From Macrostomum hystrix (lineage: Eukaryota; Animalia; Platyhelminthes), in the NCBI GenBank assembly GCA_950097015.1, contig CATNEN010000001.1:124001-188000 (forward strand): 64,000 bases of DNA. The letters are read 5' to 3'. Below, in pieces: positions 2,865-35,917 of the stretch (positions within the stretch are counted from its first letter, which is position 1; the number at the start of each line of letters is the position of its first letter). The position numbers were made by a program, and so were the translations under genes. A model generated the notes under the pieces. The model worked only from the letters and a program-made list of their open reading frames with translations. It did not search any database and was not told the DNA's origin.

Positions 2865-5800
2865 ATGGACACCAATGCTAGCGTCCGTGGACCGGAAGAT
2901 GCCGGATCAGAGGACCGGGAACTCGAGGATGCAGAATCGCCGGTCTCTTCGTGGGAAGACAGTGGATCAATGAGTCAGAGAAGTGAGTCGGACTCAACTT
3001 TCTCTCTGCTGAGCGTTGAAAACTTCTTAATGAACCAAGAGCCTTGGTTGCTAGTTTTCTTCTGGAACATCAAGTATGGAGGTGTTGAAAATAGTCTGCG
3101 CAATGACCTTCTTCGAGCCATAGACAGCAGCGACTCTGAGGAGCTGAGCAGAATATCAGACAGAATCAGAAGAGGACTTCAAGACGATGAGGATGCAGAA
3201 GTGAAAGTGCTGCTGCTTTATGTCAGCCGCCAAGCCAGACCTGGAACTGCTGCAGTTCTTGACTGAAAGACACGCCGACTCATGCCTGCAGGTGCGAAGT
3301 TCATCAGCGAACAACATGCTGCACTTTGTGTGCGGATGCGACAACTCAGATTCAGCAACTGCAGCCTTGGAGCTGATCTACAACAAAGTGGGCAAACAGC
3401 TGGTCAAGGAGGTCAACAACTCGAAGCAGCTGCCTGTACACATCGCAGCTGAAAACAGCAAGAATCCTGCAGTGTTTCTCTGGCTCATTTCCACCGTCGA
3501 GGACAAGAATCTGTTTTTCGTTCAAGACGACAGCGGCTACAGTGCTGTTAGCATAGCATTTTATAAGCAGAATTTGGACACACTCAAACAAGTGACTGAG
3601 AAGCTTGGTCTGGCGGAGTGCCTGGCGGCAAAAACTGCCAAAAATGTAAATATTTGCAAAAGAGCCGCATTCAATACAGCCAATCCTGCAGTGTTTCTCT
3701 GGCTCATTTCCACCGTCGAGGACAAGAAACTGTTTTTCGTTCATGACGATTATGGCCAAACTGCTGTTAGCCTCGCATTTGAGAAGCAGAATTTGGACAC
3801 TCTCAAACAAGTGACTGAGAAGCTTGGTCTGGCGGAGTGCCTGGCGGCAAAAACTGCCAAAAATCAAAATATTTGCCTTCGAGCCGCATTCAATACAGCC
3901 AATCCTGCAGTGTTTCTCTGGCTCATTTCCACCGTCGAGGACAAGAAACTGTTTTTCGTTCATGACGATTATGGCCAAACTGCTGTTAGCCTCGCATTTG
4001 AGAAGCAGAATTTGGACACTCTCAAACAAGTGACTGAGAAGCTTGGTCTGGCGGAGTGCCTGGCGGCAAAAACTGCCAAAAATCAAAATATTTGCCTTCG
4101 AGCCGCATTCAATACAGCCAATCCTGCAGTGTTTCTCTGGCTCATTTCCACCGTCGAGGACAAGAATCTGTTTTTCGTTCAAGACGATGACGGCTACAGT
4201 GCTGTTTTCGTAGCCTTTGATCAGCTGAACTTGGACACACTCAAACAAGTGACTGAGAAGCTTGGTCTGGCGGAGTGCCTGGCGGCAAAAACTGCCAAAA
4301 ATGTAAATATTTGCAAAAGAGCCGCATTCAATACAGCCAATCCTGCAGTGTTTCTCTGGCTCATTTCCACCGTCGAGGATAAAAATCTGTTTTTCGTTCA
4401 TGACGATTATGGCCAAACTGCTGTTAGCCTCGCATTTGAGAAGCAGAATTTGGACACTCTCAAACAAGTGACTGAGAAGCTTGGTCTGGCGGAGTGCCTG
4501 GCGGCAAAAACTGCCAAAAATGAAAATATTTGCAAAAGAGCCGCATTAAATACAGCCAATCCTGCAGTGTTTCTCTGGCTCATTTCCACCGTCGAGGACA
4601 AGAATCTGTTTTTCGTTCAAGACGATGACGGCTACAGTGCTGTTTTCGTAGCCTTTGATCAGCTGAACTTGGACACACTCAAACAAGTGACTGAGAAGCT
4701 TGGTCTGGCGGAGTGCCTGGCGGCAAAAACTGCCAAAAATGTAAATATTTGCAAAAGAGCCGCATTCAATACAGCCAATCCTGCAGTGTTTCTCTGGCTC
4801 ATTTCCACCGTCGAGGACAAGAAACTGTTTTTCGTTCATGACGATTATGGCCAAACTGCTGTTAGCCTCGCATTTGAGAAGCAGAATTTGGACACTCTCA
4901 AACAAGTGACTGAGAAGCTTGGTCTGGCGGAGTGCCTGGCGGCAAAAACTGCCAAAAATGAAAATATTTGCAAAAGAGCCGCATTAAATACAGCCAATCC
5001 TGCAGTGTTTCTCTGGCTCATTTCCACCGTCGAGGACAAGAATCTGTTTTTCGTTCAAGACGATGACGGCTACAGTGCTGTTTTCGTAGCCTTTGATCAG
5101 CTGAACTTGGACACACTCAAACAAGTGACTGAGAAGCTTGGTCTGGCGGAGTGCCTGGCGGCAAAAACTGCCAAAAATGTAAATATTTGCAAAAGAGCCG
5201 CATTCAATACAGCCAATCCTGCAGTGTTTCTCTGGCTCATTTCCACCGTCGAGGACAAGAAACTGTTTTTCGTTCATGACGATTATGGCCAAACTGCTGT
5301 TAGCCTCGCATTTGAGAAGCAGAATTTGGACACTCTCAAACAAGTGACTGAGAAGCTTGGTCTGGCGGAGTGCCTGGCGGCAAAAAACTGCCAAAAATCA
5401 AAATATTTGCCTTCGAGCCGCATTCAATACAGCCAATCCTGCAGTGTTTCTCTGGCTCATTTCCACCGTCGAGGATAAAAATCTGTTTTTCGTTCAAGAC
5501 GACGACGGCTACAGTGCTGTTAGCATAGCATTTTATCAGCTGAACTTGGACACACTCAAAAAAGTGACTGAGAAGCTTGGTCTGGCGGAGTGCCTGGCGG
5601 CAAAAACTGCCAAAAATCAAAATATTTGCCTTCGAGCCGCATTCAATACAGCCAATCCTGCAGTGTTTCTCTGGCTCATTTCCACCGTCGAGGACAAGAA
5701 TCTGTTTTTCGTTCAAGACGATGACGGCTACAGTGCTGTTTTCGTAGCCTTTGATCAGCTGAACTTGGACACACTCAAACAAGTGACTGAGAAGCTTGGT

Positions 5801-8800
5801 CTGGCGGAGTGCCTGGCGGCAAAAACTGCCAAAAATGTAAATATTTGCAAAAGAGCCGCATTCAATACAGCCAATCCTGCAGTGTTTCTCTGGCTCATTT
5901 CCACCGTCGAGGATAAAAATCTGTTTTTCGTTCATGACGATTATGGCCAAACTGCTGTTAGCCTCGCATTTGAGAAGCAGAATTTGGACACTCTCAAACA
6001 AGTGACTGAGAAGCTTGGTCTGGCGGAGTGCCTGGCGGCAAAAACTGCCAAAAATGAAAATATTTGCAAAAGAGCCGCATTAAATACAGCCAATCCTGCA
6101 GTGTTTCTCTGGCTCATTTCCACCGTCGAGGACAAGAATCTGTTTTTCGTTCAAGACGATGACGGCTACAGTGCTGTTTTCGTAGCCTTTGATCAGCTGA
6201 ACTTGGACACACTCAAACAAGTGACTGAGAAGCTTGGTCTGGCGGAGTGCCTGGCGGCAAAAACTGCCAAAAATGTAAATATTTGCAAAAGAGCCGCATT
6301 CAATACAGCCAATCCTGCAGTGTTTCTCTGGCTCATTTCCACCGTCGAGGACAAGAAACTGTTTTTCGTTCATGACGATTATGGCCAAACTGCTGTTAGC
6401 CTCGCATTTGAGAAGCAGAATTTGGACACTCTCAAACAAGTGACTGAGAAGCTTGGTCTGGCGGAGTGCCTGGCGGCAAAAACTGCCAAAAATGAAAATA
6501 TTTGCAAAAGAGCCGCATTAAATACAGCCAATCCTGCAGTGTTTCTCTGGCTCATTTCCACCGTCGAGGACAAGAAACTGTTTTTCGTTCATGACGATTA
6601 TGGCCAAACTGCTGTTAGCCTCGCATTTGAGAAGCAGAATTTGGACACTCTCAAACAAGTGACTGAGAAGCTTGGTCTGGCGGAGTGCCTGGCGGCAAAA
6701 ACTGCCAAAAATCAAAATATTTGCCTTCGAGCCGCATTCAATACAGCCAATCCTGCAGTGTTTCTCTGGCTCATTTCCACCGTCGAGGATAAAAATCTGT
6801 TTTTCGTTCAAGACGACGACGGCTACAGTGCTGTTAGCATAGCATTTTATCAGCTGAACTTGGACACACTCAAAAAAGTGACTGAGAAGCTTGGTCTGGC
6901 GGAGTGCCTGGCGGCAAAAACTGCCAAAAATCAAAATATTTGCCTTCGAGCCGCATTCAATACAGCCAATCCTGCAGTGTTTCTCTGGCTCATTTCCACC
7001 GTCGAGGATAAAAATCTGTTTTTCGTTCAAGACAACGACGGCTACAGTGCTGTTAGCATAGCATTTTATCAGCTGAACTTGGACACACTCAAAAAAGTGA
7101 CTGAGAAGCTTGGTCTGGCGGAGTGCCTGGCGGCAAAAACTGCCAAAAATGTAAATATTTGCAAAAGAGCCGCATTCAATACAGCCAATCCTGCAGTGTT
7201 TCTCTGGCTCATTTCCACCGTCGAGGACAAGAAACTGTTTTTCGTTCATGACGATTATGGCCAAACTGCTGTTAGCCTCGCATTTGAGAAGCAGAATTTG
7301 GACACTCTCAAACAAGTGACTGAGAAGCTTGGTCTGGCGGAGTGCCTGGCGGCAAAAACTGCCAAAAATCAAAATATTTGCCTTCGAGCCGCATTCAATA
7401 CAGCCAATCCTGCAGTGTTTCTCTGGCTCATTTCCACCGTCGAGGATAAAAATCTGTTTTTCGTTCAAGACGACGACGGCTACAGTGCTGTTAGCATAGC
7501 ATTTTATCAGCTGAACTTGGACACACTCAAAAAAGTGACTGAGAAGCTTGGTCTGGCGGAGTGCCTGGCGGCAAAAACTGCCAAAAATCAAAATATTTGC
7601 CTTCGAGCCGCATTCAATACAGCCAATCCTGCAGTGTTTCTCTGGCTCATTTCCACCGTCGAGGATAAAAATCTGTTTTTCGTTCAAGACGACGACGGCT
7701 ACAGTGCTGTTAGCATAGCATTTTATCAGCTGAACTTGGACACACTCAAAAAAGTGACTGAGAAGCTTGGTCTGGCGGAGTGCCTGGCGGCAAAAACTGC
7801 CAAAAATGAAAATATTTGCCTTCGAGCCGCATTAAATACAGCCAATCCTGCAGTGTTTCTCTGGCTCATTTCCACCGTCGAGGACAAGAATCTGTTTTTC
7901 GTTCAAGATAATGAAGGCTACAGTGCTGTAACCACTGCATTTCTTAAGCAGAATTTGGACACACTCAAACAAGTGACTGAGAAGCTTGGTCTGGCGGAGT
8001 GCCTGGCGGCAAAAACTGCCAAAAATCAAAATATTTGCCTTCGAGCCGCATTCAATACAGCCAATCCTGCAGTGTTTCTCTGGCTCATTTCCACCGTCGA
8101 GGACAAGAATCTGTTTTTCGTTCAAGACGATGACGGCTACAGTGCTGTTTTCGTAGCCTTTGATCAGCTGAACTTGGACACACTCAAACAAGTGACTGAG
8201 AATCTTGGTCTGGCGGAGTGCCTGGCGGCAAAAACTGCCAAAAATGAAAATATTTGCAAAAGAGCCGCATTAAATACAGCCAATCCTGCAGTGTTTCTCT
8301 GGCTCATTTCCACCGTCGAGGACAAGAATCTGTTTTTCGTTCAAGATAATGAAGGCTACAGTGCTGTAACCACTGCATTTTATAAGCAGAACTTGGACAC
8401 TCTCAAACAAGTGACTGAGAAGCTTGGTCTGGCGGAGTGCCTGGCGGCAAAAACTGCCAAAAATGTAAATATTTGCAAAAGAGCCGCATTCAATACAGCC
8501 AATCCTGCAGTGTTTCTCTGGCTCATTTCCACCGTTGAGGACAAGAAACTGTTTTTCGTTCATGACGATTATGGCCAAACTGCTGTTAGCCTCGCATTTG
8601 AGAAGCAGAATTTGGACACTCTCAAACAAGTGACTGAGAAGCTTGGTCTGGCGGAGTGCCTGGCGGCAAAAACTGCCAAAAATCAAAATATTTGCCTTCG
8701 AGCCGCATTCAATACAGCCAATCCTGCAGTGTTTCTCTGGCTCATTTCCACCGTCGAGGACAAGAAACTGTTTTTCGTTCATGACGATTATGGCCAAACT

Positions 8801-11800
8801 GCTGTTAGCCTCGCATTTGAGAAGCAGAATTTGGACACTCTCAAACAAGTGACTGAGAAGCTTGGTCTGGCGGAGTGCCTGGCGGCAAAAACTGCCAAAA
8901 ATCAAAATATTTGCCTTCGAGCCGCATTCAATACAGCCAATCCTGCAGTGTTTCTCTGGCTCATTTCCACCGTCGAGGACAAGAATCTGTTTTTCGTTCA
9001 AGACGATGACGGCTACAGTGCTGTTTTCGTAGCCTTTGATCAGCTGAACTTGGACACACTCAAACAAGTGACTGAGAAGCTTGGTCTGGCGGAGTGCCTG
9101 GCGGCAAAAACTGCCAAAAATGTAAATATTTGCAAAAGAGCCGCATTCAATACAGCCAATCCTGCAGTGTTTCTCTGGCTCATTTCCACCGTCGAGGACA
9201 AGAAACTGTTTTTCGTTCATGACGATTATGGCCAAACTGCTGTTAGCCTCGCATTTGAGAAGCAGAATTTGGACACTCTCAAACAAGTGACTGAGAAGCT
9301 TGGTCTGGCGGAGTGCCTGGCGGCAAAAACTGCCAAAAATCAAAATATTTGCCTTCGAGCCGCATTCAATACAGCCAATCCTGCAGTGTTTCTCTGGCTC
9401 ATTTCCACCGTCGAGGAAAAAAATCTGTTTTTCGTTCAAGACGACGACGGCTACAGTGCTGTTAGCATAGCATTTTATCAGCTGAACTTGGACACACTCA
9501 AACAAGTGACTGAGAAGCTTGGTCTGGCGGAGTGCCTGGCGGCAAAAACTGCCAAAAATCAAAATATTTGCCTTCTAGCCGCATTAAATGCAGCCAATCC
9601 TGCAGTGTTTCTCTGGCTCATTTCCACCGTCGAGGACAAGAATCTGTTTTTCGTTCAAGATAATGAAGGCTACAGTGCTGTAAACACTGCATTTCTTAAG
9701 CAGAATTTAGACACACTCAAACAAGTGACTGAGAAGCTTGGTCTGGCGGAGTGCCTGTCGGCAAAAACTGCCAAAAATCAAAATATTTGCCTTCGAGCCG
9801 CATTCAATACAGCCAATCCTGCAGTGTTTCTCTGGCTCATTTCCACCGTCGAGGATAAAAATCTGTTTTTCGTTCAAGACGACGACGGCTACAGTGCTGT
9901 TAGCATAGCATTTTTTAATCAGAACTTGGACACACTCAAACAAGTGACTGAGAAGCTTGGTCTGGCGGAGTGCCTGGCGGCAAAAACTGCCAAAAATCAA
10001 AATATTTGCCTTCGAGCCGCATTAAATACAGCCAATCCTGCAGTGTTTCTCTGGCTCATTTCCACCGTCGAGGATAAAAATCTGTTTTTCGTTCAAGACG
10101 ACGACGGCTACAGTGCTGTTAGCATAGCATTTTATCAGCTGAACTTGGACACACTCAAAAAAGTGACTGAGAAGCTTGGTCTGGCGGAGTGCCTGGCGGC
10201 AAAAACTGCCAAAAATCAAAATATTTGCAAAAGAGCCGCATTAAATACAGCCAATCCTGCAGTGTTTCTCTGGCTCATTTCCACCGTCGAGGACAAGAAT
10301 CTGTTTTTCGTTCAAGATAATGAAGGCTACAGTGCTGTTAGCATAGCATTTTATCAGCTGAACTTGGACACACTCAAAAAAGTGACTGAGAAGCTTGGTC
10401 TGGCGGAGTGCCTGGCGGCAAAAACTGCCAAAAATCAAAATATTTGCCTTCGAGCCGCATTAAATACAGCCAATCCTGCAGTGTTTCTCTGGCTCATTTC
10501 CACCGTCGAGGATAAAAATCTGTTTTTCGTTCAAGACGACGACGGCTACAGTGCTGTTAGCATAGCATTTTATCAGCTGAACTTGGACACACTCAAAAAA
10601 GTGACTGAGAAGCTTGGTCTGGCGGAGTGCCTGGCGGCAAAAACTGCCAAAAATCAAAATATTTGCAAAAGAGCCGCATTAAATACAGCCAATCCTGCAG
10701 TGTTTCTCTGGCTCATTTCCACCGTCGAGGACAAGAATCTGTTTTTCGTTCAAGATAATGAAGGCTACAGTGCTGTAACCACTGCATTTCTTAAGCAGAA
10801 TTTGGACACACTCAAACAAGTGACTGAGAAGCTTGGTCTGGCGGAGTGCCTGGCGGCAAAAACTGCCAAAAATCAAAATATTTGCCTTCGAGCCGCATTC
10901 AATACAGCCAATCCTGCAGTGTTTCTCTGGCTCATTTCCACCGTCGAGGACAAGAAACTGTTTTTCGTTCATGACGATTATGGCCAAACTGCTGTTAGCC
11001 TCGCATTTGAGAAGCAGAATTTGGACACTCTCAAACAAGTGACTGAGAAGCTTGGTCTGGCGGAGTGCCTGGCGGCAAAAACTGCCAAAAATCAAAATAT
11101 TTGCCTTCGAGCCGCATTCAATACAGCCAATCCTGCAGTGTTTCTCTGGCTCATTTCCACCGTCGAGGACAAGAAACTGTTTTTCGTTCATGACGATTAT
11201 GGCCAAACTGCTGTTAGCCTCGCATTTGAGAAGCAGAATTTGGACACTCTCAAACAAGTGACTGAGAAGCTTGGTCTGGCGGAGTGCCTGGCGGCAAAAA
11301 CTGCCAAAAATCAAAATATTTGCTTTCGAGCCGCATTCAATTCAGCCAATCCTGCAGTGTTTCTCTGGCTCATTTCCACCGTCGAGGACAAGAAACTGTT
11401 TTTCGTTCATGACGATTATGGCCAAACTGCTGTTAGCCTCGCATTTGAGAAGCAGAATTTGGACACACTCAAACAAGTGACTGAGAAGCTTGGTCTGGCG
11501 GAGTGCCTGGCGGCAAAAACTGCCAAAAATGAAAATATTTGCCTTCGAGCCGCATTCAATACAGCCAATCCTGCAGTGTTTCTCTGGCTCATTTCCATCG
11601 TCGAGGACAAGAATCTGTTTTTCTGTCACGATGATGACGGCTACAGTGCTGTTAGCACTGCATTTTTTAAGCAGAACTTGGACACACTCAAACAAGTGAC
11701 TGCGAAGCTTGGTCTGGCGGAGTGCCTGGCGGCAAAAACTGCCAAAAATCAAAATATTTGCCTTCGAGCCGCAATAAATGCAGCCAATCCTGCAGTGTTT

Positions 11801-14800
11801 CTCTGGCTCATTTCCATCGTCGAGGACAAGAAACTGTTCTTTGCAAAGGCAGCAGGTGATTTCGGAAGCAATGCCGTCAATTATGCCTTTTATCGCCAAG
11901 GGTTGGTCACAGTGAAGCTTTTGACAGACCGTTTTGGACTCAGCGAGTGTTTGAGCTGCATTGACAATCTAAATCGGGATTTGTTTTATGATTCTATTCT
12001 GAACAGCGCGAACCCGGCAGTATTTCCCTGGCTTCTCGAGCAGGTCTCCCAGCAATGTCCAGACAAGAAGTCCAGAATTTTCGAGTTGGATTCCAACGGC
12101 AACACTCTGCTTCATGCACTGTTTAGGAAGGTCGATTTGTTCGGCGATGCTGATGCGCTTGCAGTGCTGATCGGCCGCATCGACTTTCTTTTTGAAAATG
12201 AAGTTGATCCAAGAAAAGAAAACAAATTCAGACTCAACTGTCTGCTTGCCGCTGAATCCAGTGCTGACAATCTCAATCGTCTTTTGCGAGCTCTTCAAAG
12301 ATCAGCGCATTTGGAAATCTTCAGAAATCTGCAAAGAAACTCGGAGGGCCTTCACGCAGCTCATGTCTTCTGCACTCGCTACGAGCTCCGAGTTATCGAG
12401 AACGATTTGAGCAAGCTGTGCGGTCTCAGTCCTGACGAGCTCCTTGCAGTCCGAGTTTCTGACGGACCGCTGAAGGACGCGACTTGTCTGCACTTTGCCT
12501 GCGAATCCGGTCACAAGCTGAACATCGAATACCTTCTAAAGAAAGGACGGAAGCTGGAAGATGAGACAGACGCCGGGCAGACGAGTGTCGACTTTGCCTG
12601 CAACAAGGCGAAGCTCGAGGATGTTTTGGATGTTGCAGAGAAGTCAGTTGGTCTCGGAAAACTGCTCAAGCTGGTTGATCCAACGAAGCGAGCTCTGAAC
12701 CTTCCGGACGTTCAGAGCGCCCGAGGTCACCTGACTCGATTCAACGACTCATCGCTGAAGGCCAGCATTGAGGATGATAAATCCAGACGACAGACGAGAG
12801 GCAAGGAAGCCGGTGAGATGAAAAACGAGAGTCTGCAGGCCGGACACGGAGCTGACAGCATTTCAAAGTCCGAGGATTCGCCAGAAGTGAAAATGCTGTT
12901 CAGAGCATTCGAGCTCGACTCAAGTGAGATGCTCCGCAGCTTGATCAGTTTGGGCTTCGCCATCGATGAGATCGATGACCAGTTCTCCAGGCATGTCTCA
13001 AAGCAAATTGGCAATGGGCGGGAAAGCAGTAAGTGTCCTACAATAGCCAAGCTTCAAAAGTACTTCTCCTCAGAAGGAAGAGAATCTGAAGCTCTCATGC
13101 TGATGGAGTACGCAGTGCTGCTCGAGAAGCCGAAGCTGCTCAATGACCTGATGCTTCTGCCACAGTTTGACATCATCCCACAGACTTTGAGGCTGCTCGT
13201 TTATCTCAAGCCCAGAGTGAAGTCGAGCAATGTTGAGAATCTGAAAAAAGTGCAAGCTCTAGCCTTGAACATTGTCGTCAATGTTCTGGAGCACCTCTAC
13301 GTGAATGCTGATGAAGAAGAGCGGAATCTTGTTTTCGACTACCTGAGTGGCTCATTTATGGTGTCAGACGGGCATCCTCAGGTTCGAGGTCCGAGGTTCC
13401 CGCCACCATTGGATTATCTTACCAGACCAATTTCAAACGATAAAACTGATCACGAAAAAGTGAGCAAAGATGCGAAGACACCAAAAAAGCCATCAGAAAA
13501 GAAGTCTGCAGCTGCAGTGATGTCAGTGATGGATCTGGTGCAGACCCTGGACTGTGACGATGTGTTTGCCACTGACTGCATCAGCCAGTTGGTGGATCAG
13601 CAGTGGAACAAGGCTCCACCGTTGCCCTGGAGCAGTCCTGCACGCTGCTGCTCATGCAACATACCGCAAAAGGTGACAATTAAACAGCGGTTCTTCATCC
13701 ACTCTGCTTTTTTCCTGGTCTTTCTTCTCTACTTTGCCTGGTACGTGACGGATTTCAGTCGGACAAAGCAGTTTCCGATTCTAGACGTCGTCCTGTTGGC
13801 CTACGCGCTGTCCTTCACTCTGCAGGAAGTCAACGACTTGCTGAACAAGCTGTCTATGAAGGACATACGAATTTTCAGAAGGCACAGGAGATGTCCTCGC
13901 TACTTCACCGACTTCTTCAACTACTTTGACATGCTCGGCCTGCTGCTGATGTGGGCGGGGCTGGTCCTGAAGCTGCTTGGTCGGCTGAGCGACCCCAGCC
14001 TCATGCGCAGCTCTCAGGTCGTCCTCAGCGTCTCGTTCCTGTTCCTGGGATTCCGCTCCGTGGCCCTGCTCAGCTACTTCAAGGTCACTGGGCCGAACAT
14101 TAGTATGCTGAAGAGCTTGCTGTTCAAAGACCTGCTGCCATTCTTGATCATCATGCTGGTTCTGATCTTCTCATTTGGCATTTTCTTCTTCAACCTGCTG
14201 TTCCCGGCCTTCTCAGACCTGACAGACGTCCTGGCTCTCGTGAAGATTTTCACAACGCCCCTGGCGCTGGCCTTAAGCATCTTTGAGCTCTCGCTGTTCG
14301 AGTCGTGCAACTCCAGCAGTCTCGCGACCGGACAGACCTGTGCGGACAGTGGAGGCAACCAGGTGTACAGCCTATTCCTGATGTTCGTGTACGTCTTGCT
14401 GGTAAACATTGTGATGTTCAACCTGCTGATCGCACTGTTCAACCGCACCGTGACAGCGATGGCCAGCAGGGCGGAGGTTCTGTGGCGCAAGAATCGGTTC
14501 GAGCTGCTGGAGGAGTTCGCAGAGGTCAGTCCGGTTCCGCCGCCGCTGTCGTTCCCGCTCTACGCCTGGAAACTGCTGCGGAGGTGCCGCCCTTCGCACT
14601 GCCGACCCTGCGCTGGCAAAGTCGGTCCTTCTGACGGCTCTGAGAGAAGCAAGGTAAGAGGCCTGGTGGACTGAGGGACTGACTCTGTTACTCACAGATG
14701 ATAAATGGTCTGAATATATAGCCCTTAGATTCAGTCAGACAATGACCGAATCCAATTTTCAATTGCAAGAACTGATTGTGTGTACATGAATGCAAATGGC

Positions 14801-15690: not shown

Positions 15691-16474
15691 CGATGCGACT
15701 TCAGCACACGCAGTTTGTAAGCTCTGAACAGTTCTAGACGAAACTGAAGTAAAAAATCAACTCGTGCACATCAGTTTGTTTTAAATTGCAAAACAACTTT
15801 CTCTTTTCCAAAGCATCCTTGACTGCTTTCAGGCCTCCAAATCAATGCGGCGCGCCTTGAACTGGCAATTCTTCAGTTGCTGGGCTGCACAATCGCCTTG
15901 GATTTGTTTAAGAACTATTTTACCAACAGAAGATTTTCAATATCAAACTTTTAATTCAGCGAGATTTCGCTACCACTGTTTTAACAGACAATTAATTACA
16001 ATTACCATCATACTTAATTTAACTCAATTTAATTTAAAATAGAAGTTCTTGGAAGATAACTACATGAACGAGCCGTATATCACAAAACTATATTTGCTTG
16101 CTTTCTACTAGCTTTGTTCGGTATTTTAAACTATTCCATTTTTTCGAACTTTGTTGAGGTACCTCTGTGCGTTGAGTTTATAATTCAGAAACTGCCTTCA
16201 ACATTGACAATGCTTTTGTGCCATCACGCTTCACTTTCTACAATTTTCTAGTGTCTTGAAATGCTTGCTGAATTTCTTGTGCTCACTGGCACCTCAGTGT
16301 GCTCAAGCCCCACCCTGAGCTCGTTTCCGCTTTTACTTGAGTACTTAGCAAGCTTTCGTATATTTTCTGGTGCTTTTTTGGTGATGACAAAGAAACATTT
16401 CCTTGCTGATGAAATTTACAGCTTCTCAAACTCGGGCAGATTTAGCACTGATTGACAGTTTGATCGAGTAATGA

Positions 16475-18005
16475 GTCTAGAATCCGCTGTGTGAGCAGTC
16501 TAGAATTCCCCTGTGCAAAGCAGTCTAGAATGCCCTGTGCGAGCAGTCTAGAATCCCCTGTGTGAGCAGTCTAGAATCCCCTGTGCAAAACAGTCTAGAA
16601 AGCCCTGTGTGAGCAGTCTAGAATCCCCTGTGTGAGCAGTCTAGAATGCCCTGTGTGAGCAGTCTAGAATCCCCTGTGTGAGCAGTCTAGAATCCCCTGT
16701 GTGAGCAGTCTAGAATCCCCTGTGTGAGCAGTCTAGAATCCTCTGTGTGAGCAGTCTAGAATCCCCTGTGTGAGCAGTCTAGAATCCCATGTGTGAGCAG
16801 TCTAGAATGCCCTGTGTGAGCAGTCTAGAATCCTCTGCTCTGTGTGAGCAGTCTAGAATGCCCTGTGTGAGCAGTCTAGAATCATCTGTGTGAGCAGTCT
16901 AGAATGCCCTGTGTGAGCAGTCTAGAATCCCCTGTGTGAGCAGTCTAGAATCCCCTATGCAAAACAGTCTAGAATCCTCTGTGTGAGCAGTCTAGAATCC
17001 CCTGTGTGAGCAGTCAAGAATCCCCTGTGCAAAACAGTCTAGAATCCCCTGTGTGAGCAGTCTAGAATCCCCTGTGTGAGCAGTCTAGAATCCCCTGTGC
17101 AAAACAGTCTAGAATCCTCTGTGTGAGCAGTCTAGAATCCCCTGTGCAAAACAGTCTAGAATCCTCTGTGTGAGCAGTCTAGAATCCCCTGTGTGAGCAG
17201 TCTAGAATCCCCTGTGTGAGCAGTCTAGAATCCCCTGTGTGAGCAGTCTAGAATCCTCTGTGTGAGCAGTCTAGAATCCCCTGTGTGAGCAGTCTAGAAT
17301 CCTCTGTGTGAGCAGTCTAAAATCCTCTGTGTGAGCAGTCTAGAATCCCCTGTGTGAGCAGTCTAGAATCCCCTGTGTGAGCAGTCTAGAATACCCTGTG
17401 TGAGCAGTCTAGAATCCCCTGTGTGAGCAGTCTAGAATCCTCTGTGTGAGCAGTCTAGAATCCTCTGTGTGAGCAGTCTAGAATCCTCTGTGTGAGCAGT
17501 CTAGAATCCCCTGTGCAAAGCAGTCTAGAATCCCCTGTGCAAAGCAGTCTAGAATGCCCTGTGTGAGCAGTCTAGAATCCCCTGTGCAAAGTAGTCTAGA
17601 ATCCCCTGTGCAAAGCAGTCTAGAATCCCCTGTGCAAAGCAGTCTAGAATCCCCTGTGCAAAGCAGTCTAGAATCCCCTGTGCAAAGCAGTCTAGAATGC
17701 CCTGTGTGAGCAGTCTAGAATCCCCTGTGCAAAGCAGTCTAGAATGCCCTGTGTGAGCAGTCTAGAATCCCCTGTGCAAAGTAGTCTAGAATCCCCTGTG
17801 CAAAGCAGTCCAGAATCCCCTGTGCAAAGCAGTCTAGAATCCCCTGTGCAAAGTAGTCTAGAATCCCCTGTGCAAAGCAGTCTAGAATCCCCTGTGCAAA
17901 GCAGTCTAGAATCCCCTGTGCAAAGCAGTCTAGAATCCCCTGTGCAAAGCAGTCTAGAATCCCCTGTGCAAAGCAGTCTAGAATCCCCTGTGCAAAGCAG
18001 TCCAT
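16475..18005. repeat. Minisatellite, 23/24-bp units AGCAGTCTAGAATCCCCTGTGTG / ...GTGCAA
   Basis: Tandem periodicity; 23-bp variant at the 5' end, 24-bp variant at the 3' end. Confidence 0.97.
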
Positions 18006-18219
18006 AATCTATAAATTCAGTTTTTAGAAATTTATTAAGTATTTTTCACTTTTAAAATTTTCAAATAGTCAAAAACAAGCACTTTCCTTTAGATATAGAC
18101 CTTTGACTTGGTTTTGCTTTTTAATTTATTTCGGTTGTTCTTTTCTTAACTGCTATTATTGTGCACACCTTTTTAAGAACTAACAAGATTACATGCTTAT
18201 CGTTTAATCTATCTTTACT

Positions 18220-19245
18220 CACATGTTTATCTGGCGTTTACAGACCCAGCTCACATGTTTATCTTGTGTTTACAGCCCTACCTCACATGTTTATCTTGTG
18301 TTTACAGCCCTAGCTGACATGTTTATCTTGTGTTTACAGCCCCAGCTCACATGTTTATCTTGTGTTTACAGCCCTAGCTCACATGTTTATCTTGTGTTTA
18401 CAGCCCTAGCTCACATGTTTATCTTGTGTTTACAGCCCTAGCTCACATGTTTATCTTGTGTTTACAGCCCTAGCTGACATGTTTATCTTGTGTTTACAGC
18501 CCCAGCTCACATGTTTATCTTGTGTTTACAGCCCCAGCTCACATGTTACCTTATTTATACAGCCCCAGCTCACTTGTTTATCTTGTGTTTACAGCCCAGC
18601 TCACATGTTTATCTTGTGTTTACAGCCCAGCTCACATGCTTATCTTGTGTTTACAGCCCCAGCTCACATTCTTATCTTGTGTTTACAGCCCAGCTCACAT
18701 GTTTATCTTGTGTTTACAGCCCCAGCTCACATGTTTATCTTGTGTTTACAGCCCCAGCTCACATGTTACCTTATTTATACAGCCCCAGCTCACTTGTTTA
18801 TCTTGTGTTTACAGCCCCAGCTCACATGTTACCTTATTTATACAGCCCCAGCTCACTTGTTTATCTTGTGTTTACAGCCCAGCTCACATGTTTATCTTGT
18901 GTTTACAGCCCAGCTCACATGCTTATCTTGTGTTTACAGCCCCAGCTCACATTCTTATCTTGTGTTTACAGCCCAGCTCACATGTTTATCTTGTGTTTAC
19001 AGCCCTAGCTCACATGTTTATCTTGTGTTTACAGCCCAGCTCACATGCTTATCTTGTGTTTACAGCCCTAGCTCACATGTTTATCTTGTGTTTACAGCCC
19101 AGCTCACATGCTTATCTTGTGTTTACAGCCCCAGCTCACATTCTTATCTTGTGGTTACAGCCCAGCTCACATGTTTTTCTTGTGTTTACAAGTTACATGT
19201 GAGTAACCAGCTCACATGGTTATCTTGTGTTTACGGCCCTAGCTC
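18220..19245. repeat. Minisatellite, 31/32-bp unit CAGCCCCAGCTCACATGTTTATCTTGTGTTTA
   Basis: Tandem periodicity. Confidence 0.96.
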
Positions 19246-23760: not shown

Positions 23761-23936
23761 GGATCTCCCGTTGCTGCTGGAGTGCAGGTGAGGGGGTTAA
23801 TTGCTGAACTAGTTTCCATAAACTACAAAACAGTTCTTTACTCTCTTAATGCTGTTATTTCTAAACAACAGTAGGTATATTAGTCGTTTGTTAAACTATG
23901 CTTTAGCTGGATTTCAGAAACACAATCCTGACAGAT

Positions 23937-25484
23937 AAAATGAGAGACACAATGATATGAAATGAGAGACACAATGACATGAAATGAGAGACACAATGAC
24001 ATGAAATGAGAGACACAATGACATGAAATGAGAGACACAATGACATGAAATGAGAGACACAATGACATGAAATGAGAGACACAATGACATGAAATGAGAG
24101 ACACAATGACATGAAATGAGAGACACAATGACATGAAATGAGAGACACAATGACATGAAATGAGAGACACAATGACATGAAATGAGAGACACAATGACAT
24201 GAAATGAGAGACACAATGACATGAAATGAGAGACACAATGACATGAAATGAGAGACACAATGACATGAAATGAGAGACACAATGACATGAAATGAGAGAC
24301 ACAATGACATGAAATGAGAGACACAATGACATGAAATGAGAGACACAATGACATGAAATGAGAGACACAATGACATGAAATGAGAGACACAATGACATGA
24401 AATGAGAGACACAATGACATGAAATGAGAGACACAATGACATGAAATGAGAGACACAATGACATGAAATGAGAGACACAATGATATGAAATGAGAGACAC
24501 AATGACATGAAATGAGAGACACAATGACATGAAATGAGAGACACAATGACATGAAATGAGAGACACAATGACATGAAATGAGAGACACAATGACATGAAA
24601 TGAGAGACACAATGACATGAAATGAGAGACACAATGACATGAAATGAGAGACACAATGACATGAAATGAGAGACACAATGACATGAAATGAGAGACACAA
24701 TGACATGAAATGAGAGACACAATGACATGAAATGAGAGACACAATGACATGAAATGAGAGACACAATGACATGAAATGAGAGACACAATGACATGAAATG
24801 AGAGACACAATGACATGAAATGAGAGACACAATGACATGAAATGAGAGACACAATGACATGAAATGAGAGACAGAATGACATGAAATGAGAGACACAATG
24901 ACATGAAATGAGAGACACAATGACATGAAATGAGAGACACAATGACATGAAATGAAAGACACAATGACATGAAATGAGAGACACAATGACATGAAATGAG
25001 AGACACAATGATATGAAATGAGAGACACAATGACATGAAATGAGAGACACAATGACATGAAATGAGAGACACAATGACATGAAATGAGAGACACAATGAC
25101 ATGAAATGAGAGACACAATGATATGAAATGAGAGACACAATGACATGAAATGAAAGACACAATGACATGAAATGAGAGACACAATGACATGAAATGAGAG
25201 ACAGAATGACATGAAATGAGAGACAGAATGACATGAAATGAGAGACAGAATGACATGAAATGAGAGACACAATGACATGAAATGAGAGACACAATGACAT
25301 GAAATGAGAGACACAATGACATGAAATGAGAGACACAATGACATGAAATGAGAGACACAATGACATGAAATGAGAGACACAATGACATGAAATGAGAGAC
25401 ACAATGACATGAAATGAGAGACACAATGACATGAAATGAGAGACACAATGACATGAAATGAGAGACACAATGACATGAAATGAG
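23937..25484. repeat. Highly homogeneous 22-bp minisatellite AAATGAGAGACACAATGACATG (~70 copies)
   Basis: Period 22; it produces the spurious minus-strand ORFs at 23880-25547. Confidence 0.98.
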
Positions 25485-26065
25485 GCCCAATTTAGTCTCC
25501 AAAGTTTGCACCTGAGCTAATTTTGCAATATTTCTTCGCGAATACATTAAAAGTCCATCTTCAAGACCTCACAGAAAGTCTAATCTTAGTATTTTAGAAA
25601 ATTATTCGTCAAGCAATGGCCCTCTCACCCAAATACACCCAAAGCAATTCGCACAGAACAATGGACAGCAACAATGAACCCACAGCCGAAACAGTTTTGC
25701 AGCAATAAAATATTCAATGGCGAGTTTGAGCAGGCTAACTCATGCTTTGTCTTCGTCTCAAACTCAACTCGAGTCTTCTCTGTGCAGATTGAAGCAAGCC
25801 CCTCAACCTGTGTGCTCAAAGTGAGCAGTGTTTAATCTCTCATGTGGCATTGAAACTGTAGCGAATGGAAGCTGAGAATGGGTTGGACAAAGTACTTTTG
25901 TCACCGACTCAAACTCATCTCAGATGCTTTAGTAGGCCATGCAGACCTGTCTCCGTATGGACTCAGTGTTCATGTACTTTAATCAGCTCATAGGGTGTTT
26001 GAGTAGCACAAACTGGAGCACACAGTCGCAATGCAGTGTAGAATGTATGCTCAGCCCATGCTTCT

Positions 26066-31144: not shown

Positions 31145-34100
31145 ATGGATCTATCAGTCTCATATATCGACAAACAGCGGAACTTCGCTGCACAGACAGA
31201 AGCTGACGAAAGCAGTCTTCGCAATGACCTTCTTCGAGCCATAGACAAAAGCGACTCCGAGGAGTTAAGCAGAGTGTCGGACAGAATCAGAAGAGGACTT
31301 CAAGACGATGAGGATGCAGAAGTGAAAGCGCTACTGCTGCAGTCAGCCGAAAAGCCAGAGCTAAAGCTGCTGAAATTCTTGACTGAAAGACACGCCGACT
31401 CATGCGTGCAGGTGCGAAGTTCATCAGCAAACAACATGCTGCACTTTGTGTGCGGATGCCACAACTCAGATTCAGCAACTGCAGCCTTGGAGCTGATCTA
31501 CGACAAAGTGGGCAAAAAGCTGGTCAAGAAGGTCAACAACTCGAAGCACCTGCCTGTACACATCGCAGCTAAAAACAGCAAGAATCCTGCAGTGTTTCTC
31601 TGGCTCATTTCCACCGTCGAGGAAAAGAATCTGTTTTTCGTTCAAGACGATTATGGCCAAACTGCTGTTAGCATCGCATTTCTTAAGCAGAATTTGGACA
31701 CTCTTAAACAAGTGACTGAGAAGCTTGGTCTGGCGGAGTGCCTGGCAGCAAAAACTGCCAAAAATGAAAATATTTGCCTTCTAGCCGCCACATTAAATGC
31801 AGCCAATCCTGCAGTGTTTCTCTGGCTCATTTCCACCGTCGAGGAAAAGAATCTGTTTTTCGTTCAAGACGATTATGGCCAAACTGCTGTTAGCATCGCA
31901 TTTGAGAAGCAGAATTTGGACACTCTTAAACAAGTGACTGAGAAGCTTGGTCTGGCGGAGTGCCTGGCAGCAAAAACTGCCAAAAATGAAAATATTTGCC
32001 TTCTAGCCGCCACATTAAATGCAGCCAATCCTGCAGTGTTTCTCTGGCTCATTTCCACCGTCGAGGACAAGAATCTGTTTTTCGTTCAAGACGACGACGG
32101 CTACAGTGCTGTTAGCATCGCATTTGAGAAGCAGAACTTGGACACACTCAAACAAGTGACTGAGAAGCTTGGTCTGGCGGAGTGCCTGGCGGCAAAAACT
32201 GCCAAAAATGAAAATATTTGCCTTCGAGCCGCATTTAATACAGACAATCCTGCAGTGTTTCTCTGGCTCATTTTCATCGTCGAGGACAAGAAACTCTTCT
32301 TTGAAAAGGATGATTATGGAGCTGCTGCTGTATCCTTTGCCTTTCATCGACAAGGCTTGAACACAGTGAAGTTTTTGACAGACCGTTTTGGACTCAGCGA
32401 GTGTTTGAGCTGCATTGACAATCTAAATCGGGATTTGTTTTATCATTCCATTCTGAACAGCGCGAACCCGGGAGTATTTCCCTGGCTTCTCGAGCAGGTC
32501 TCCCAGCAATGTCCAGACAAGAAGTCCAGAATTTTCGAGTTGGATTCCAACGGCAACACTCTGCTTCATGCACTGTTTAGGAAGGTTGATTTGTTCGGCG
32601 ATGTTGATGCGCTTGCAGTGCTGATCGGTCGCATCGACTTTCTTTTTGAAAATGAAGTTGATCCAAGAAAAGAAAACAAATTCAGACTCAACTGTCTGCT
32701 TGCCGCTGAATCCAGTGCTGACAATCTCAATCGTCTTTTGCGAGCTCTTCAAAGATCAGCGCATTTGGAAATCTTCAGAAATCTGCAAAGAAACTCAGAG
32801 GGCCTTCACGCAGCTCATGTCTTCTGCACTCGCTACGAGCTCCGAGTTATCGAGAACGATTTGAGCAAGCTGTGCGGTCTCAGTCCTGACGAGCTCCTTG
32901 CAGTCCGAGTTTCTGACGGACCGCTGAAGGATGCAACTTGTCTGCACTTTGCCTGCGAATCCGGTCACAAGTTGAACATCGAATACCTTCTAAAGAAAGG
33001 ACAGAAACTGGAAGATGAGACAGACGCCGGGCAGACGAGTGTCGACTTTGCCTGCAACAAGGCGAAGCTCGAGGATGTTTTGGATGTTGCAGAGAAGTCA
33101 GTTGGTCTCAGAAAACTGCTCAAGCTGGTTGATCCGACGAAGCGAGCTCTGAACCTTCCGGACGTTCAGAGCGCCCGAAGTCACCTGACTCGATTCAGCG
33201 ACTCATCGCTCAAGGCCAGCATTGAAGATGATAAATCCAGACGACAGACGAGAGGCGAGGAAGCCGGTGTGATGAAAAATGAGATTCATGTCGGACACGG
33301 AGTGAAAATGCTGTTCAGAGCATTCGAGCTCGACTCAAGTGAGATGCTCCGCAGCTTGATCAGTTTGGGCTTCGCCATCGATGAGATCGATGACCAGTTC
33401 TCCAGGCATGTCTCAAAGCAAATTGGCAATGGGCGGGAAAGCAGTAAGTCTCCTACAATAGCCAAGCTTCAAAAGTACTTCTCCTCAGAAGAAAGAGATT
33501 CTGAAGCTCTCATTCTGATGGAGTACGCAGTGCTGCTCGAGAAGCCGAAGCTGCTCAATGACCTGATGCTTCTGCCACAGTTTGACATCATCCCACAGAC
33601 TTTGAGGCTGCTGGTTTATCTCAAGCCCAGAGTGAAGTCGAGCAATGTTGAGAATCTGACAAAGGTGCAAGCTCTAGCTTTGAACATTGTCATCAATGTT
33701 CTGGAGCACCTCTACGTGAATGCTGCCGCTCTACGTGAAGAGCGGAATTTTTTTTTCGACTACCTGACTGGCTCATTTATGGTGTCAGACGGGCATTCTC
33801 AGGTTCAAGGTCCGAGGTTCCCGCCACCATTGGATTATCTTAACAGACCAATTTCAAACGAAAAAGTGAGAAAAGATGCGAAGACACCAAAAAAGCCATC
33901 AGAAAATAAGTCTGCAGCTGCAGTGATGTCAGTGATGGAGCTGGTGCGGACCCTGGACTGTGACGATGTGTTTGCCACTGACTGCATCAGCCAGTTGGTG
34001 GATCGGCAGTGGAACGAGGCTCCACCGCTGCCCTGGAGCAGTCCTGCACGCTGCTGCTCATGCAACATACCGCAAAAGGTGACAATTAAACAGCGGTTCA

Positions 34101-35917
34101 TCATCCATCATGATTTTTTCCTGGTCTTTCTGCTCTACTTTGCCTGGTACGTGACGGATTTCAGTCGGACAAAGCAGTTTCCGATTCTAGACGTCGTCCT
34201 GTTGGCCTACGCGCTGTCCTTCACTCTGCAGGAAGTCAACGACTTGCTGAACAAGCTGTCTATGAAGGACATACGAAGGCACATGAGATGTCCTCGCTAC
34301 TTCACCGACTTCTCCAACTACTTTGACATGCTCGGCCTGCTGCTGATGTGGGCGGGGCTGGTCCTGAAGCTGCTTGGCCGGCTGAGCGACCCCAGCCTCA
34401 TGCGCAGCTCTCAGGTCGTCCTCAGCGTCTCGTTCCTGTTCCTGGGATTCCGCTCCGTGGCCCTGCTCAGGTACTTCAAGGTCACTGGGCCGAACATTAG
34501 TATGCTGAAGAGCTTGCTGTTCAAAGACCTGCTGCCATTCTTGATCATCATGCTGGTTCTGATCTTCTCATTTGGCATTTTCTTCTTCAACCTGCTGTTC
34601 CCGGCCTTCTCAGACCTGACAGACGTCCTGGCTCTCGTGAAGATTTTCACAACGCCCCTGGCGCTGGCCTTAAGCATCTTTGAGCTCTCGCTGTTCGAGT
34701 CGTGCAACTCCAGCAGTCTCGCGACCGGACAGACCTGTGCGGACAGTGGAGGCAACCAGGTGTACAGCCTATTCCTGATGTTCGTGTACGCCTTCCTAAT
34801 GAACATTGTGATGTTCAATATGCTGATCGCACTGTTCAACCGCACCGTGACAGCGATGGCCAGAAGGGAGGTTCTGTGGCGCAAGAATCGGTTCGAGCTG
34901 CTGGAGGAGTTCGCAGAGGTCAGTCCGGTTCCGCCGCCGCTGTCGTTCCCGCTCTACGCCTGGAAACTGCTGCGGAGGTGCCGCCCTTCGCACTGCCGAC
35001 CCTGCGCTGGCAAAGTCGGTCCTTCTGACGGCTCTGAGAGAAGCAAGGTAAGAGGCCTGGTGGACTGAAGGACTGACTCTGTTACTCACAGATGATAAAT
35101 GGTCTGAATATATAGCCATTAGATTCAGTCAGACAATGACCGAATCCAATTTTCGATTGAAAGAATTGATTGTGTGTACACGAATGCAAATGGCTTTGTA
35201 GCAAAGACATGCTCAGATTATAGTAAGCTGGGGCTGGTCATGAAACTCTTGAGGACTGATTAACAGTAGAAGCAAGGTGAGAGGCCTGGTGAGCACAGGT
35301 GAACTGAGGGGCTGACTATGTTTACTCATATAGGCACTAGATTCAGTCAGACGATGACCGAATCCAATTTAAATGGAAATAACAGGTTGTGTGCACATGA
35401 TTGCAAATAAGCTCATGTTTCAAGGCGCTCTTCCTCACGGCTTCCGTTCCAGCCGTGGTGGACGAACCGGAGCGACTTCAGCGGCTACCCCGAAGACTTC
35501 AAGCGCTTCCTGATCTTCCAGGCCGAGCAGCTCCGGCAGCAGCGGCCACAGCTGCAGCGGGCGGTCGAGCGGCACAAGGGGGACGTCGATGTGCTGAAGG
35601 CGCACGTGGAGAACCAGGTCAAGGACCTGCGGGAGGAACTGCGGGATAATATTCAGGATGTGCTCACCGCTCAGAGAGAGGACACTGAGAAAATCGAGAC
35701 CGATGTGAAGGGCGTCAAAGAAAGTGTTGGAAAGATGAACGCAGATGTTGGAAAGCTGAACGAGGGCGTCAACGAACTCAAAGAGCTGCAGCTCCGCCAA
35801 CGAAGACGAGCAAAGCGTCTAGACGATAAGATGACAGAAAATTCCGAGAACCTGCAGCAGCAAATGTCGCAGGTGATGAGCATTCTGCAGCAACTGCAGC
35901 AGCAGCGTCAGCAGTGA
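31145..35917 (+). CDS. Ankyrin-repeat TRP-superfamily cation channel (copy 2), ~1455 aa; exons 31145-35047 and 35453-35917
   Basis: Intact 1307-aa ORF with the same ankyrin/6-TM/TRP-box architecture as copy 1 but only 3 units of the 73/74-aa repeat (222, 222, 219 bp from 31583). Phase-0 intron AAG|GTAAGA at 35048 to TTCCAG|CCG at 35453, in frame with the coiled-coil exon. Confidence 0.92.

Follow-up and report, generated by a model that had tools for sequence, protein, structure and literature searches.

Gene A (2865-14674) lies within the window, the 64,000-nucleotide stretch of Macrostomum hystrix DNA analysed in this study, and combines in one intronless gene a long array of near-identical ankyrin modules with a TRPM-like six-helix pore C-terminal to it. 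The pattern is real and unusual: one double-ankyrin module is almost the same as the next, and the differences are confined to a handful of groove-facing residues. We consider it probable that gene A carries the longest array in a family of ten ankyrin plus TRPM-like channel genes of the Macrostomum lineage, with modules that evolve in concert, few groove cassettes and an array that serves as an intracellular platform, gene A itself being a probable recent pseudogene.

Results

Upstream of gene A, Tandem Repeats Finder detected a 23-bp satellite of about 96 copies with strong GC skew (14-2245, no strand assigned), whose 3' end is separated from the first ATG of the gene by 620 bp. All features of the gene are on the forward strand. 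The N-terminal coding segment (2865-3219, in the frame of base 2865) was aligned with paralog B, L033 and L009 and is homologous to the in-frame N-termini of the paralogs; its frame stops at 3266. An N-terminal ankyrin cap region (3220-3462; Pfam Ank_2 at residues 3-96 of the piece, E 1.1e-8) precedes the array. The initial annotation had described an array of 38 units at 3463-11785, and this was upheld by Tandem Repeats Finder (period 219, 38.2 copies and 92% matches at 3463-11838) and by separate extraction, which gave 38 units and a degenerate 39th (11786-12004). Each unit of 219 bp comprises 73 codons and two ankyrin repeats, in agreement with Ank_2, AlphaFold and Foldseek. More diverged ankyrin repeats prolong the solenoid (12005-12674), with AlphaFold helices up to about model residue 515 and Ank_2/Ank_4 matches at residues 230-276. 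The linker or pre-S1 cytoplasmic region (12675-13690) is conserved among Macrostomum homologues in the alignment consensus and gave no match in a Pfam search. The six-helix channel domain, S1-S6 with the pore (13691-14473), was located by Ion_trans (residues 643-896), TRPM alignments (residues 621-940) and hydropathy segments (636-893). It is followed by a TRP-box-like helix, LWRKNRFELL, just 3' of S6 (14480-14509) and by a short C-terminal tail with the stop codon that ends the ORF (14510-14674).

The gene had been annotated as a TRP channel, and its C-terminus indeed carries a TRP-type pore. PF00520 (Ion_trans) matched with E values of 1.5e-7 and 8e-8, and the best 60 solved-structure matches were almost all TRPM2/3/4/5/7/8 (E down to 2e-16); no NOMPC chain was present among these best 60 sequence matches of the channel piece. 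LWRKNRFELL starts 6 residues past the last hydrophobic segment and falls inside the TRPM alignments. Neither Pfam nor the sequences of solved structures revealed melastatin homology regions at the N-terminus, where the ankyrin solenoid is located, and no NOD/STAND signalling domain was found by Pfam search. Hydropathy placed hydrophobic segments in the channel domain only. Since neither a signal peptide nor a membrane segment was detected in the array, and since it is N-terminal to the pore, the array is probably cytoplasmic. The immune, non-self or chemosensing role proposed for it was unsupported on these grounds. Judged by topology and by analogy to NOMPC and ankyrins, the array of the intact paralogs would not be an extracellular or immune-type receptor, and a role inside the cell, in tethering or binding, is more probable than non-self sensing. 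In these paralogs, the array probably acts as a tether, a spring or a platform for binding, its length and the composition of its groove differing from one paralog to another.

To describe the fold, a single-sequence AlphaFold model of the N-terminus and four units (pLDDT 51.7) was replaced by a model based on a 28-sequence alignment, which reached a pLDDT of 93.5 and a pTM of 0.85 and presents a solenoid of helix-turn-helix and hairpin elements. The top Foldseek matches were NOMPC, ankyrin-1, AnkB, TRPA1 and DARPins (E 5e-13 to 1e-7). Five units scored 30.7 bits with Ank_2 in Pfam against a gathering cutoff of 27.3, and the homologous M. lignano array P0007 matched Ank_2 with an E value of 4.7e-56; three units alone, searched by sequence against solved structures, returned no ankyrin protein (E > 0.3). 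The TPLH motif with its conserved histidine is absent from the array units, which carry S/F/T/N and L/K/F at the histidine sites, and the histidine is kept in diverged paralogs and in P0007. Variable sites were then mapped onto the groove via the secondary structure of the model. Of the 16 commonly variable residues, 14 sit in a hairpin loop, in an inner helix or in the turn that comes next (Fisher p 3.8e-4), and units of the paralogs reproduce the positional variability profile (rho 0.70), as does M. lignano P0003 (rho 0.48). The proposal that the variable sites occupy the ankyrin binding face was therefore borne out on this confident model; its extension to the positions randomised in DARPins holds for the first repeat of each unit (six of six) but not for most of those in the second (two of six). 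These results define the anatomy of the array and, as modelled, its ankyrin fold.

Only 19 distinct units (20 when counted as DNA) are found among the 38, one of them in eight copies; they combine 13 + 10 cassette haplotypes, of which three in each set predominate. All units agree at about 96 of the 219 bases. Between the main unit types, none of the 96 scaffold bases differs, compared with 9-19 of 90 bases in cassette 1, and cassette haplotypes diverge by 10-21% at the DNA level. The residue sets originally listed for the two variable cassettes were matched exactly in the 38 units, with 2-5 residues at each variable site. Near-invariance of the scaffold was found at codons 1-13 and 44-61, where no variant, synonymous or nonsynonymous, is common to at least two units, but the first of the proposed scaffold segments varies in DNA at codons 37, 40 and 43. 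The description of the array as hypervariable and DARPin-library-like was overstated: diversity is low, and the array reuses a few cassette haplotypes again and again instead of drawing on a library. In the order of unit types, units 4-10 are almost duplicated as units 11-16, and the 5' half of the array consists of five unit types arranged in duplicated blocks. Targeted hypermutation of the cassettes was rejected, as the base changes have no strand- or base-specific pattern and the haplotypes are common to paralogs.

A search of the genome yielded nine further close paralogs, all open, and the ten genes are tandemly clustered, gene A having the longest array. Their C-termini are 94-100% identical. 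Paralog B (31145-35068, forward strand) is intact, with 1307 codons, the same layout and three units, two of them of 222 bp; its C-terminus is 94% identical to that of gene A. Array spans imply about 2-38 units among the ten paralogs, an about 15-fold range, with unit counts taken from the match table and units sampled as the last 2-4 of each paralog and the first of one. The other long arrays, in intact paralogs, have 29, 21 and 16 units. The paralogs are 0.5-4.1% different in their coding regions and 1.6-26% different in their 3' flanks, and the nearest neighbours are not the same in the two comparisons. The C1 and C5 clusters were rejected as simple allelic haplotigs, as no one-to-one pairing was present in both coding sequence and flank. 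The paralogs display mosaic homogenisation, and their coding regions have evidently been homogenised by gene conversion, judging from these sequence comparisons. The nearest public proteins are all from Macrostomum lignano, the only species returned by word-indexed homologue searches; the nearest relatives outside Macrostomum are trematode and cestode proteins with ankyrin and Ion_trans (Opisthorchis, Schistocephalus), one of which is named TRPM7 in UniRef. Arrays of M. lignano use a scaffold of their own, homogeneous within the species. In its diverged arrays the groove positions are conserved and not free, and groove variation is therefore no default of the family.

We propose concerted evolution of the 73-residue double-ankyrin modules, driven by unequal crossing-over inside each array and by gene conversion that acts both within a paralog and from one paralog to another. 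This process would keep the scaffold identical and let the unit number swing from about 2 to 38, and the array of gene A may have been inflated largely via recent block duplication of its five unit types. A few old cassette haplotypes, which extend over the hairpin loop and the inner helix in every repeat, the elements of the concave groove, would escape homogenisation.

As assembled, gene A contains two +1 insertions, at about 3217-3219 and 5382-5387. At the first, pairwise alignments gave a T run of TTT against TT in the paralogs; the extra T divides the N-terminal coding segment (ORF 2865-3266) from the remainder of the gene and also generates the ATG at 3220. An intron at this break was rejected, since the paralogs are collinear and in frame there. 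At the second, unit 9 (5215-5434) is 220 bp instead of 219 bp because an A5 run, found in 14 other units of the same type, became A6, splitting the reading frame into ORFs 3220-5478 and 5357-14674; the upstream frame stops at 5478. Both breaks are confined to gene A, the nine close paralogs being open. Given the two frameshifts, gene A is most likely a very recent pseudogene, and a mis-polished copy is less likely; being frameshifted, it would add less than its paralogs. It is very improbable that the array length, the two single-base insertions or both are long-read assembly or polishing errors in a repetitive region. Homopolymer runs host both insertions, and near-duplicate multi-unit blocks are present in the array, as such errors would suggest. 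However, the longest exact internal repeat is only 1015 bp, the 3' half is aperiodic, about 130 units across the nine other paralogs are without frame error, and the first insertion is outside the array, in non-repetitive sequence.

Selection on the aligned units was examined by event-based dN/dS. The whole unit gave 0.64-0.89, and the ten face codons gave about 1.2-1.7, with no significant excess over 1 (p 0.04-0.4 according to the baseline chosen, on only about 4 synonymous sites), while omega was 0.23-0.34 in the remaining cassette codons. These values do not establish diversifying selection. Within the cassettes, diversity is higher at third codon positions than at the first two. Synonymous polymorphisms cluster in the cassettes, adjoining nonsynonymous ones (p 0.004), and scaffold synonymous diversity is zero. 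These two observations suggest that the cassettes may be selectively maintained, which would bring the picture closer to the idea behind the initial annotation.

The same variation could be a functionless by-product in a dead gene, where the 10-21% divergence blocks heteroduplex formation and confines conversion tracts to the scaffold, and where 38 units reflect unconstrained slippage. The two breaks in gene A alone, the duplicated blocks of five unit types in its 5' half, the overall omega below 1 and the excess of third-position diversity are consistent with this. We nevertheless regard it as unlikely: the intact paralogs with 29, 21 and 16 units show the same positional pattern, about 3100 codons past the second break are still open, and conserved groove positions in diverged M. 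lignano arrays are not what a family default of groove variation would give.

Stronger roles for the cassettes were also weighed against concerted evolution of an intracellular platform. It is unlikely, in our judgement, that family-wide selection guards a small combinatorial groove-cassette code against a homogenisation powerful enough to wipe out every other difference inside and among the genes, with composition and length setting the intracellular partners of each channel. Were this true, candidate partners would be cytoskeletal filaments and microbial or endogenous ligands, and the fungal NLR repeat sensors would have a counterpart among animal ion channels. Quite doubtful is the original proposal of a diversifying immune, non-self or chemical recognition surface, selected, shuffled and coupled to channel gating. 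The variable sites do fall on the canonical ankyrin binding face; homogenisation is complete at neutral scaffold sites, while diversity in the cassettes, linked synonymous sites included, persists; M. lignano arrays, homogenised independently, vary at the same positions; face codons exceed other cassette codons in omega; and fungal NLR ankyrin arrays offer a parallel (PMC4986451). Against it, omega does not significantly exceed 1, third positions are the more diverse, the haplotypes are few with three of each dominating, the array is probably cytoplasmic, immune-type domains are absent, and gene A is frameshifted.

Discussion

The layout of this family was taken to be new, but N-terminal ankyrin repeats with a TRPM-like pore have already been published for flatworm TRPM_MCLZ (Smp_333650) and its parasitic-flatworm orthologues (PMC10788528, PMC12861061). 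Both share N-terminal ankyrin repeats, a TRPM-like six-helix pore and a TRP helix, and the family may be assigned a TRPM_MCLZ-type architecture, a likeness that rests on architecture, the further marks of the class being Smp_333650 orthology and activation by meclonazepam. The published channels are not described with homogenised tandem modules, whereas 76 of the about 86 ankyrin repeats of gene A are near-identical copies; the about 15-fold range in repeat number among the M. hystrix paralogs and the broken state of gene A are further differences. The relatives of the family include an anthelmintic drug target. With nearly identical pores and arrays of graded length, the family provides a natural series and a ready test of solenoid length and groove composition in TRP gating.

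Fungal NLR ankyrin/TPR/WD arrays, for which positive selection has been shown (Dyrka et al. 2014, PMC4986451), have more than 85% internal conservation, variable repeat number and concerted evolution, and the array of gene A has 92% matches. In both systems, polymorphism is confined to the inner helices of the concave face and the hairpin loop (PMC4986451). The flatworm array differs in being on an ion channel without NOD/STAND, in its double-repeat unit and in its small haplotype alphabet. The claimed fungal hallmark is recognisable in the anatomy (homogenised scaffold, concave-face variation, repeat number varying among paralogs), whereas positive selection is established for the fungal arrays only.

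With the register taken from Pfam and the model helices, the first repeat of each unit varies at every one of the six sites that DARPin libraries randomise (33, 2, 3, 5, 13 and 14). In contrast to DARPins, the second repeat varies at positions 5 and 13 only, the array sites have 2-5 residues each, linked in few haplotypes, and variation extends to positions 9 and 10, which are buried or semi-buried.

NOMPC has 29 diverged ankyrin repeats in fixed number. If the intact paralogs are expressed, they would provide a rare animal example of a homogenised ankyrin solenoid and, to our knowledge, by far the most ankyrin repeats of any TRP channel, about 68 in the open 29-unit paralog. Like NOMPC/TRPN, whose chain 5vkq_A was the best structural match of the model, gene A joins a TRP pore to a long N-terminal ankyrin solenoid that is probably cytoplasmic; unlike it, gene A has a TRPM-like pore and up to about 86 homogenised repeats, in a number that is variable.

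Channel Domain and Ankyrin Fold

In gene A, the gene under study, Tandem Repeats Finder located the array at 3463-11838, with a period of 219 bp, 38.2 copies, and 92% matches. Cutting at this period gave 38 units of 73 codons each; a 39th, at 11786, is degenerate. The array sits within a single long coding region of the + strand, in which no sign of introns was seen. An Ion_trans domain was found within the last 962 codons (E 1.5e-7). In a sequence search, this piece matched the solved structures of TRPM2, TRPM3, TRPM4, TRPM5, TRPM7, and TRPM8 from S1 to the TRP helix, with E down to 2e-16. Its hydrophobic segments are confined to residues 636-893 and are followed by a TRP-box-like sequence, LWRKNRFELL.

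As ankyrin repeats, the array units are very divergent. No solved ankyrin protein was found by sequence when three units were used as the query. Five units scored 30.7 bits against Pfam Ank_2 (gathering score 27.3), and a homologous array in the Macrostomum lignano protein P0007 matched Ank_2 with an E of 4.7e-56. An AlphaFold run on a single sequence, the N-terminus and four units, gave a pLDDT of 51.7. When units 36-39 and the downstream repeats were modeled from an alignment of 28 sequences, taken from paralogs and M. lignano homologues, the pLDDT was 93.5 (pTM 0.85). The best Foldseek matches to the latter model were the NOMPC ankyrin spring (5vkq_A, E 4.7e-13), ankyrin-1, AnkB, Drosophila TRPA1, and DARPins. 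One 73-residue unit forms two ankyrin repeats: an outer helix (residues 2-11), a short extra helix (15-19), a hairpin loop (20-27), and an inner helix (28-35), followed by an outer helix (38-48), a short extra helix (50-55), a loop (56-63), and an inner helix (64-69).

The N-termini of TRP channels are cytosolic. Because, in addition, neither a hydrophobic segment nor a signal peptide was detected in the N-terminal pieces of gene A, the array is predicted to lie inside the cell. From the fold similarity found by Foldseek and this topology, the solenoid of the intact paralogs is probably a tether or spring, or a binding platform as in NOMPC and ankyrins.

Variation and Selection among the Units

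The 38 units fall into 20 different sequences at the DNA level and 19 at the protein level, and one DNA unit is present eight times. Variable columns number 47 of 219, 35 of which vary in more than one unit. Two variable stretches, cassettes 1 and 2, lie within a near-invariant scaffold, and their residue sets were the same as those listed in the initial annotation. Three of the 13 haplotypes of cassette 1 account for 26 units, and three of the 10 haplotypes of cassette 2 for 29 units. Units 11-16 are a near repeat of units 4-10.

Sixteen residue positions vary in at least two units. When these were mapped on the AlphaFold model, 14 fell within the 34 positions that make up the hairpin loops, the inner helices, and the turns that follow, and two within the remaining 39 (Fisher p 3.8e-4); exposure was derived from secondary structure and canonical ankyrin geometry. 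Of the six DARPin-type positions (33, 2, 3, 5, 13, and 14), the first repeat varies at every one (unit positions 21, 23, 24, 26, 34, and 35) and the second at just two, 5 and 13 (unit positions 62 and 70). The histidine positions of the TPLH motif (30 and 66) and a neighbor (31) are variable as well. The array had been described as resembling a DARPin library. These results bear out the location of the variable sites on groove elements but not library-like hypervariability, as there are 19 distinct proteins built from few haplotypes. The observation was partly confirmed, and its interpretation as a recognition array coupled to a cation pore was partly supported.

Selection was examined by counting the minimum mutational events per codon, with ranges spanning two counts; the site analysis covered 63 units, the arrays of the other paralogs having been read in part. 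The dN/dS was 0.64-0.89 for the whole unit, 0.55-0.75 for the cassettes, and 0.23-0.34 for the cassette codons outside the binding face. For ten face codons, which hold only about four synonymous sites, it was 1.2-1.7, which did not exceed 1 significantly (p 0.04 to 0.4, according to the baseline used). Within cassettes, diversity was higher at third codon positions (0.178) than at first and second positions (0.102).

Paralogs and the Status of Gene A

A search of the 220-Mb, 42-contig genome with the channel piece identified ten paralogs, gene A included, with 94-100% amino-acid identity. Five are located at C1:20-160 kb, on the contig of gene A (the window is C1:124001-188000), and the other five at the end of C5 (C5:5.96-6.07 Mb). 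Since the C5 cluster occupies the extreme end of its contig and the C1 cluster the extreme beginning of its own, an assembly gap may have split a single cluster in two. The array spans imply about 2-3, 3, 9, 12, 13, 14, 16, 21, 29, and 38 units. One of these genes, paralog B (31145-35068), is intact, with 1307 codons and only three units. Two of its units have 222 bp, with one extra codon (AATLNAA), and its N-terminus upstream of the conserved segment is unlike that of other paralogs. The intergenic space near the channel genes is crowded with satellites whose periods are short (21-63 bp); they lie at 14-2245, 16474-17992, 18218-19190, 23880-25547, 39798-40310, 46333-47979, 54024-54734, and 58006-59274. 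Some have a strong GC skew, and the satellites yield long spurious ORFs. A distant paralog on contig C38 (L011, L039) is likewise flanked by a satellite.

The nine paralogs other than gene A have open frames from the N-terminus through the array. In gene A, two + strand ORFs, 3220-5478 and 5357-14674, overlap in different frames. The switch is one extra A in unit 9, which has A6 (5382-5387) versus an identical A5 run in the other units of its type. Comparison with paralog B and two other paralogs revealed a conserved N-terminal segment (ORF 2865-3266, + strand). In these paralogs the segment shares its frame with the remainder of the gene. In gene A it does not, and another +1 insertion lies at 3217-3219. 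Gene A as assembled therefore consists of three open pieces in successive frames, and spans about 3930 codons when read through both breaks. The longest exact repeat inside the array is 1015 bp, with copies at 4028-5042 and 5562-6576 that are shifted by seven units and the single inserted base. This duplicate marks a recent multi-unit block duplication bracketing the frame break in unit 9.

Since two independent +1 insertions interrupt an otherwise open frame, gene A is most simply read as a pseudogene of very recent origin that carries the most inflated array. Assembly error would also account for the frame breaks, but it is less likely, as about 130 units of the nine other paralogs are without frame errors and the first insertion (3217-3219) is outside the repeat.

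Homogenization of the Scaffold

The divergence between the main unit types is a striking mosaic: cassette 1 shows 9-19 differences in 90 bases and cassette 2 shows 0-6 in 33, but none of the 96 scaffold bases differs. The cassettes and the scaffold each offer 24.7 synonymous sites; about 12.5 common synonymous variants were counted in the former and none in the latter (p 3e-5). In a test run without pre-defined cassette boundaries, purely synonymous polymorphic codons lay 1.4 codons from the nearest nonsynonymous one, compared to 3.3 expected (p 0.004). Simple relaxed constraint does not account for this, because neutral scaffold sites are erased while cassette differences survive. Two readings of this persistence remain: selection for different groove types, or a cassette divergence of 10-21% that blocks conversion tracts.

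The coding regions of the ten paralogs (C1:35-160 kb and C5:5.96-6.07 Mb) are 0.5-4.1% apart, whereas their 3' flanks are 1.6-26% apart and have other nearest neighbors. Gene A and the copy at C5:5985343 differ by 0.5% in coding sequence and 15.8% in the flank. Because coding regions and flanks are discordant in both divergence and grouping, homogenization acts between genes too, which indicates gene conversion between paralogs. M. lignano arrays have another scaffold, homogeneous within that species; this pattern is that of classical concerted evolution.

The per-position entropy profile of the gene A array was compared with other arrays; rho was 0.70 for the paralog units, 0.48 for the M. 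lignano homologue P0003, 0.25 for P0001/P0002 of that species, and 0.01 for its older, diverged P0007/P0010. In P0007/P0010, groove positions are conserved and outer helices are variable. These two and the C38 paralog (L039, minus strand) are older, non-homogenized arrays of the same 73-residue double-ankyrin module. They keep the canonical histidines, and their conserved groove and varying outer helices are the opposite of the homogenized arrays.

Gene A is part of a lineage-specific expansion of ankyrin-TRPM-like channels, whose cytoplasmic solenoids most likely lengthen and shorten via unequal crossing-over between identical scaffold segments, a process that would also shuffle cassette 1 and cassette 2 types.

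Relatives and Known Channels

The close public homologues are all M. lignano proteins, with 49-64% identity; the genome studied here is that of another, related flatworm. An exhaustive profile-free search returned 802 relatives. Outside Macrostomum, the two closest are a protein from Opisthorchis annotated as "ankyrin repeat protein" and one from Schistocephalus with the UniRef name TRPM7, both with ankyrin and Ion_trans domains. A further protein, P0022 (NCBI MEE4247282.1; 1537 residues), is 41% identical to the gene A channel domain. Its 5.1-kb contig is labeled as part of the MAG of a Kangiellaceae bacterium, and its JGI name is ankyrin repeat protein. The contig is probably eukaryotic and flatworm-like, and mis-binned into the bacterial MAG.

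The initial annotation stated that no such architecture had been described for animal TRP channels. This was wrong, because the layout has been published for TRPM_MCLZ (Smp_333650), the schistosome target of meclonazepam. It carries N-terminal ankyrin repeats, groups beside the TRPMs, and was formerly named TRPM7-like (PMC10788528; PMC12861061). Compared by architecture, its layout is exactly that of gene A. Gene A joins two kinds of system already known, the TRPM_MCLZ-type channel and the ankyrin array of high internal conservation.
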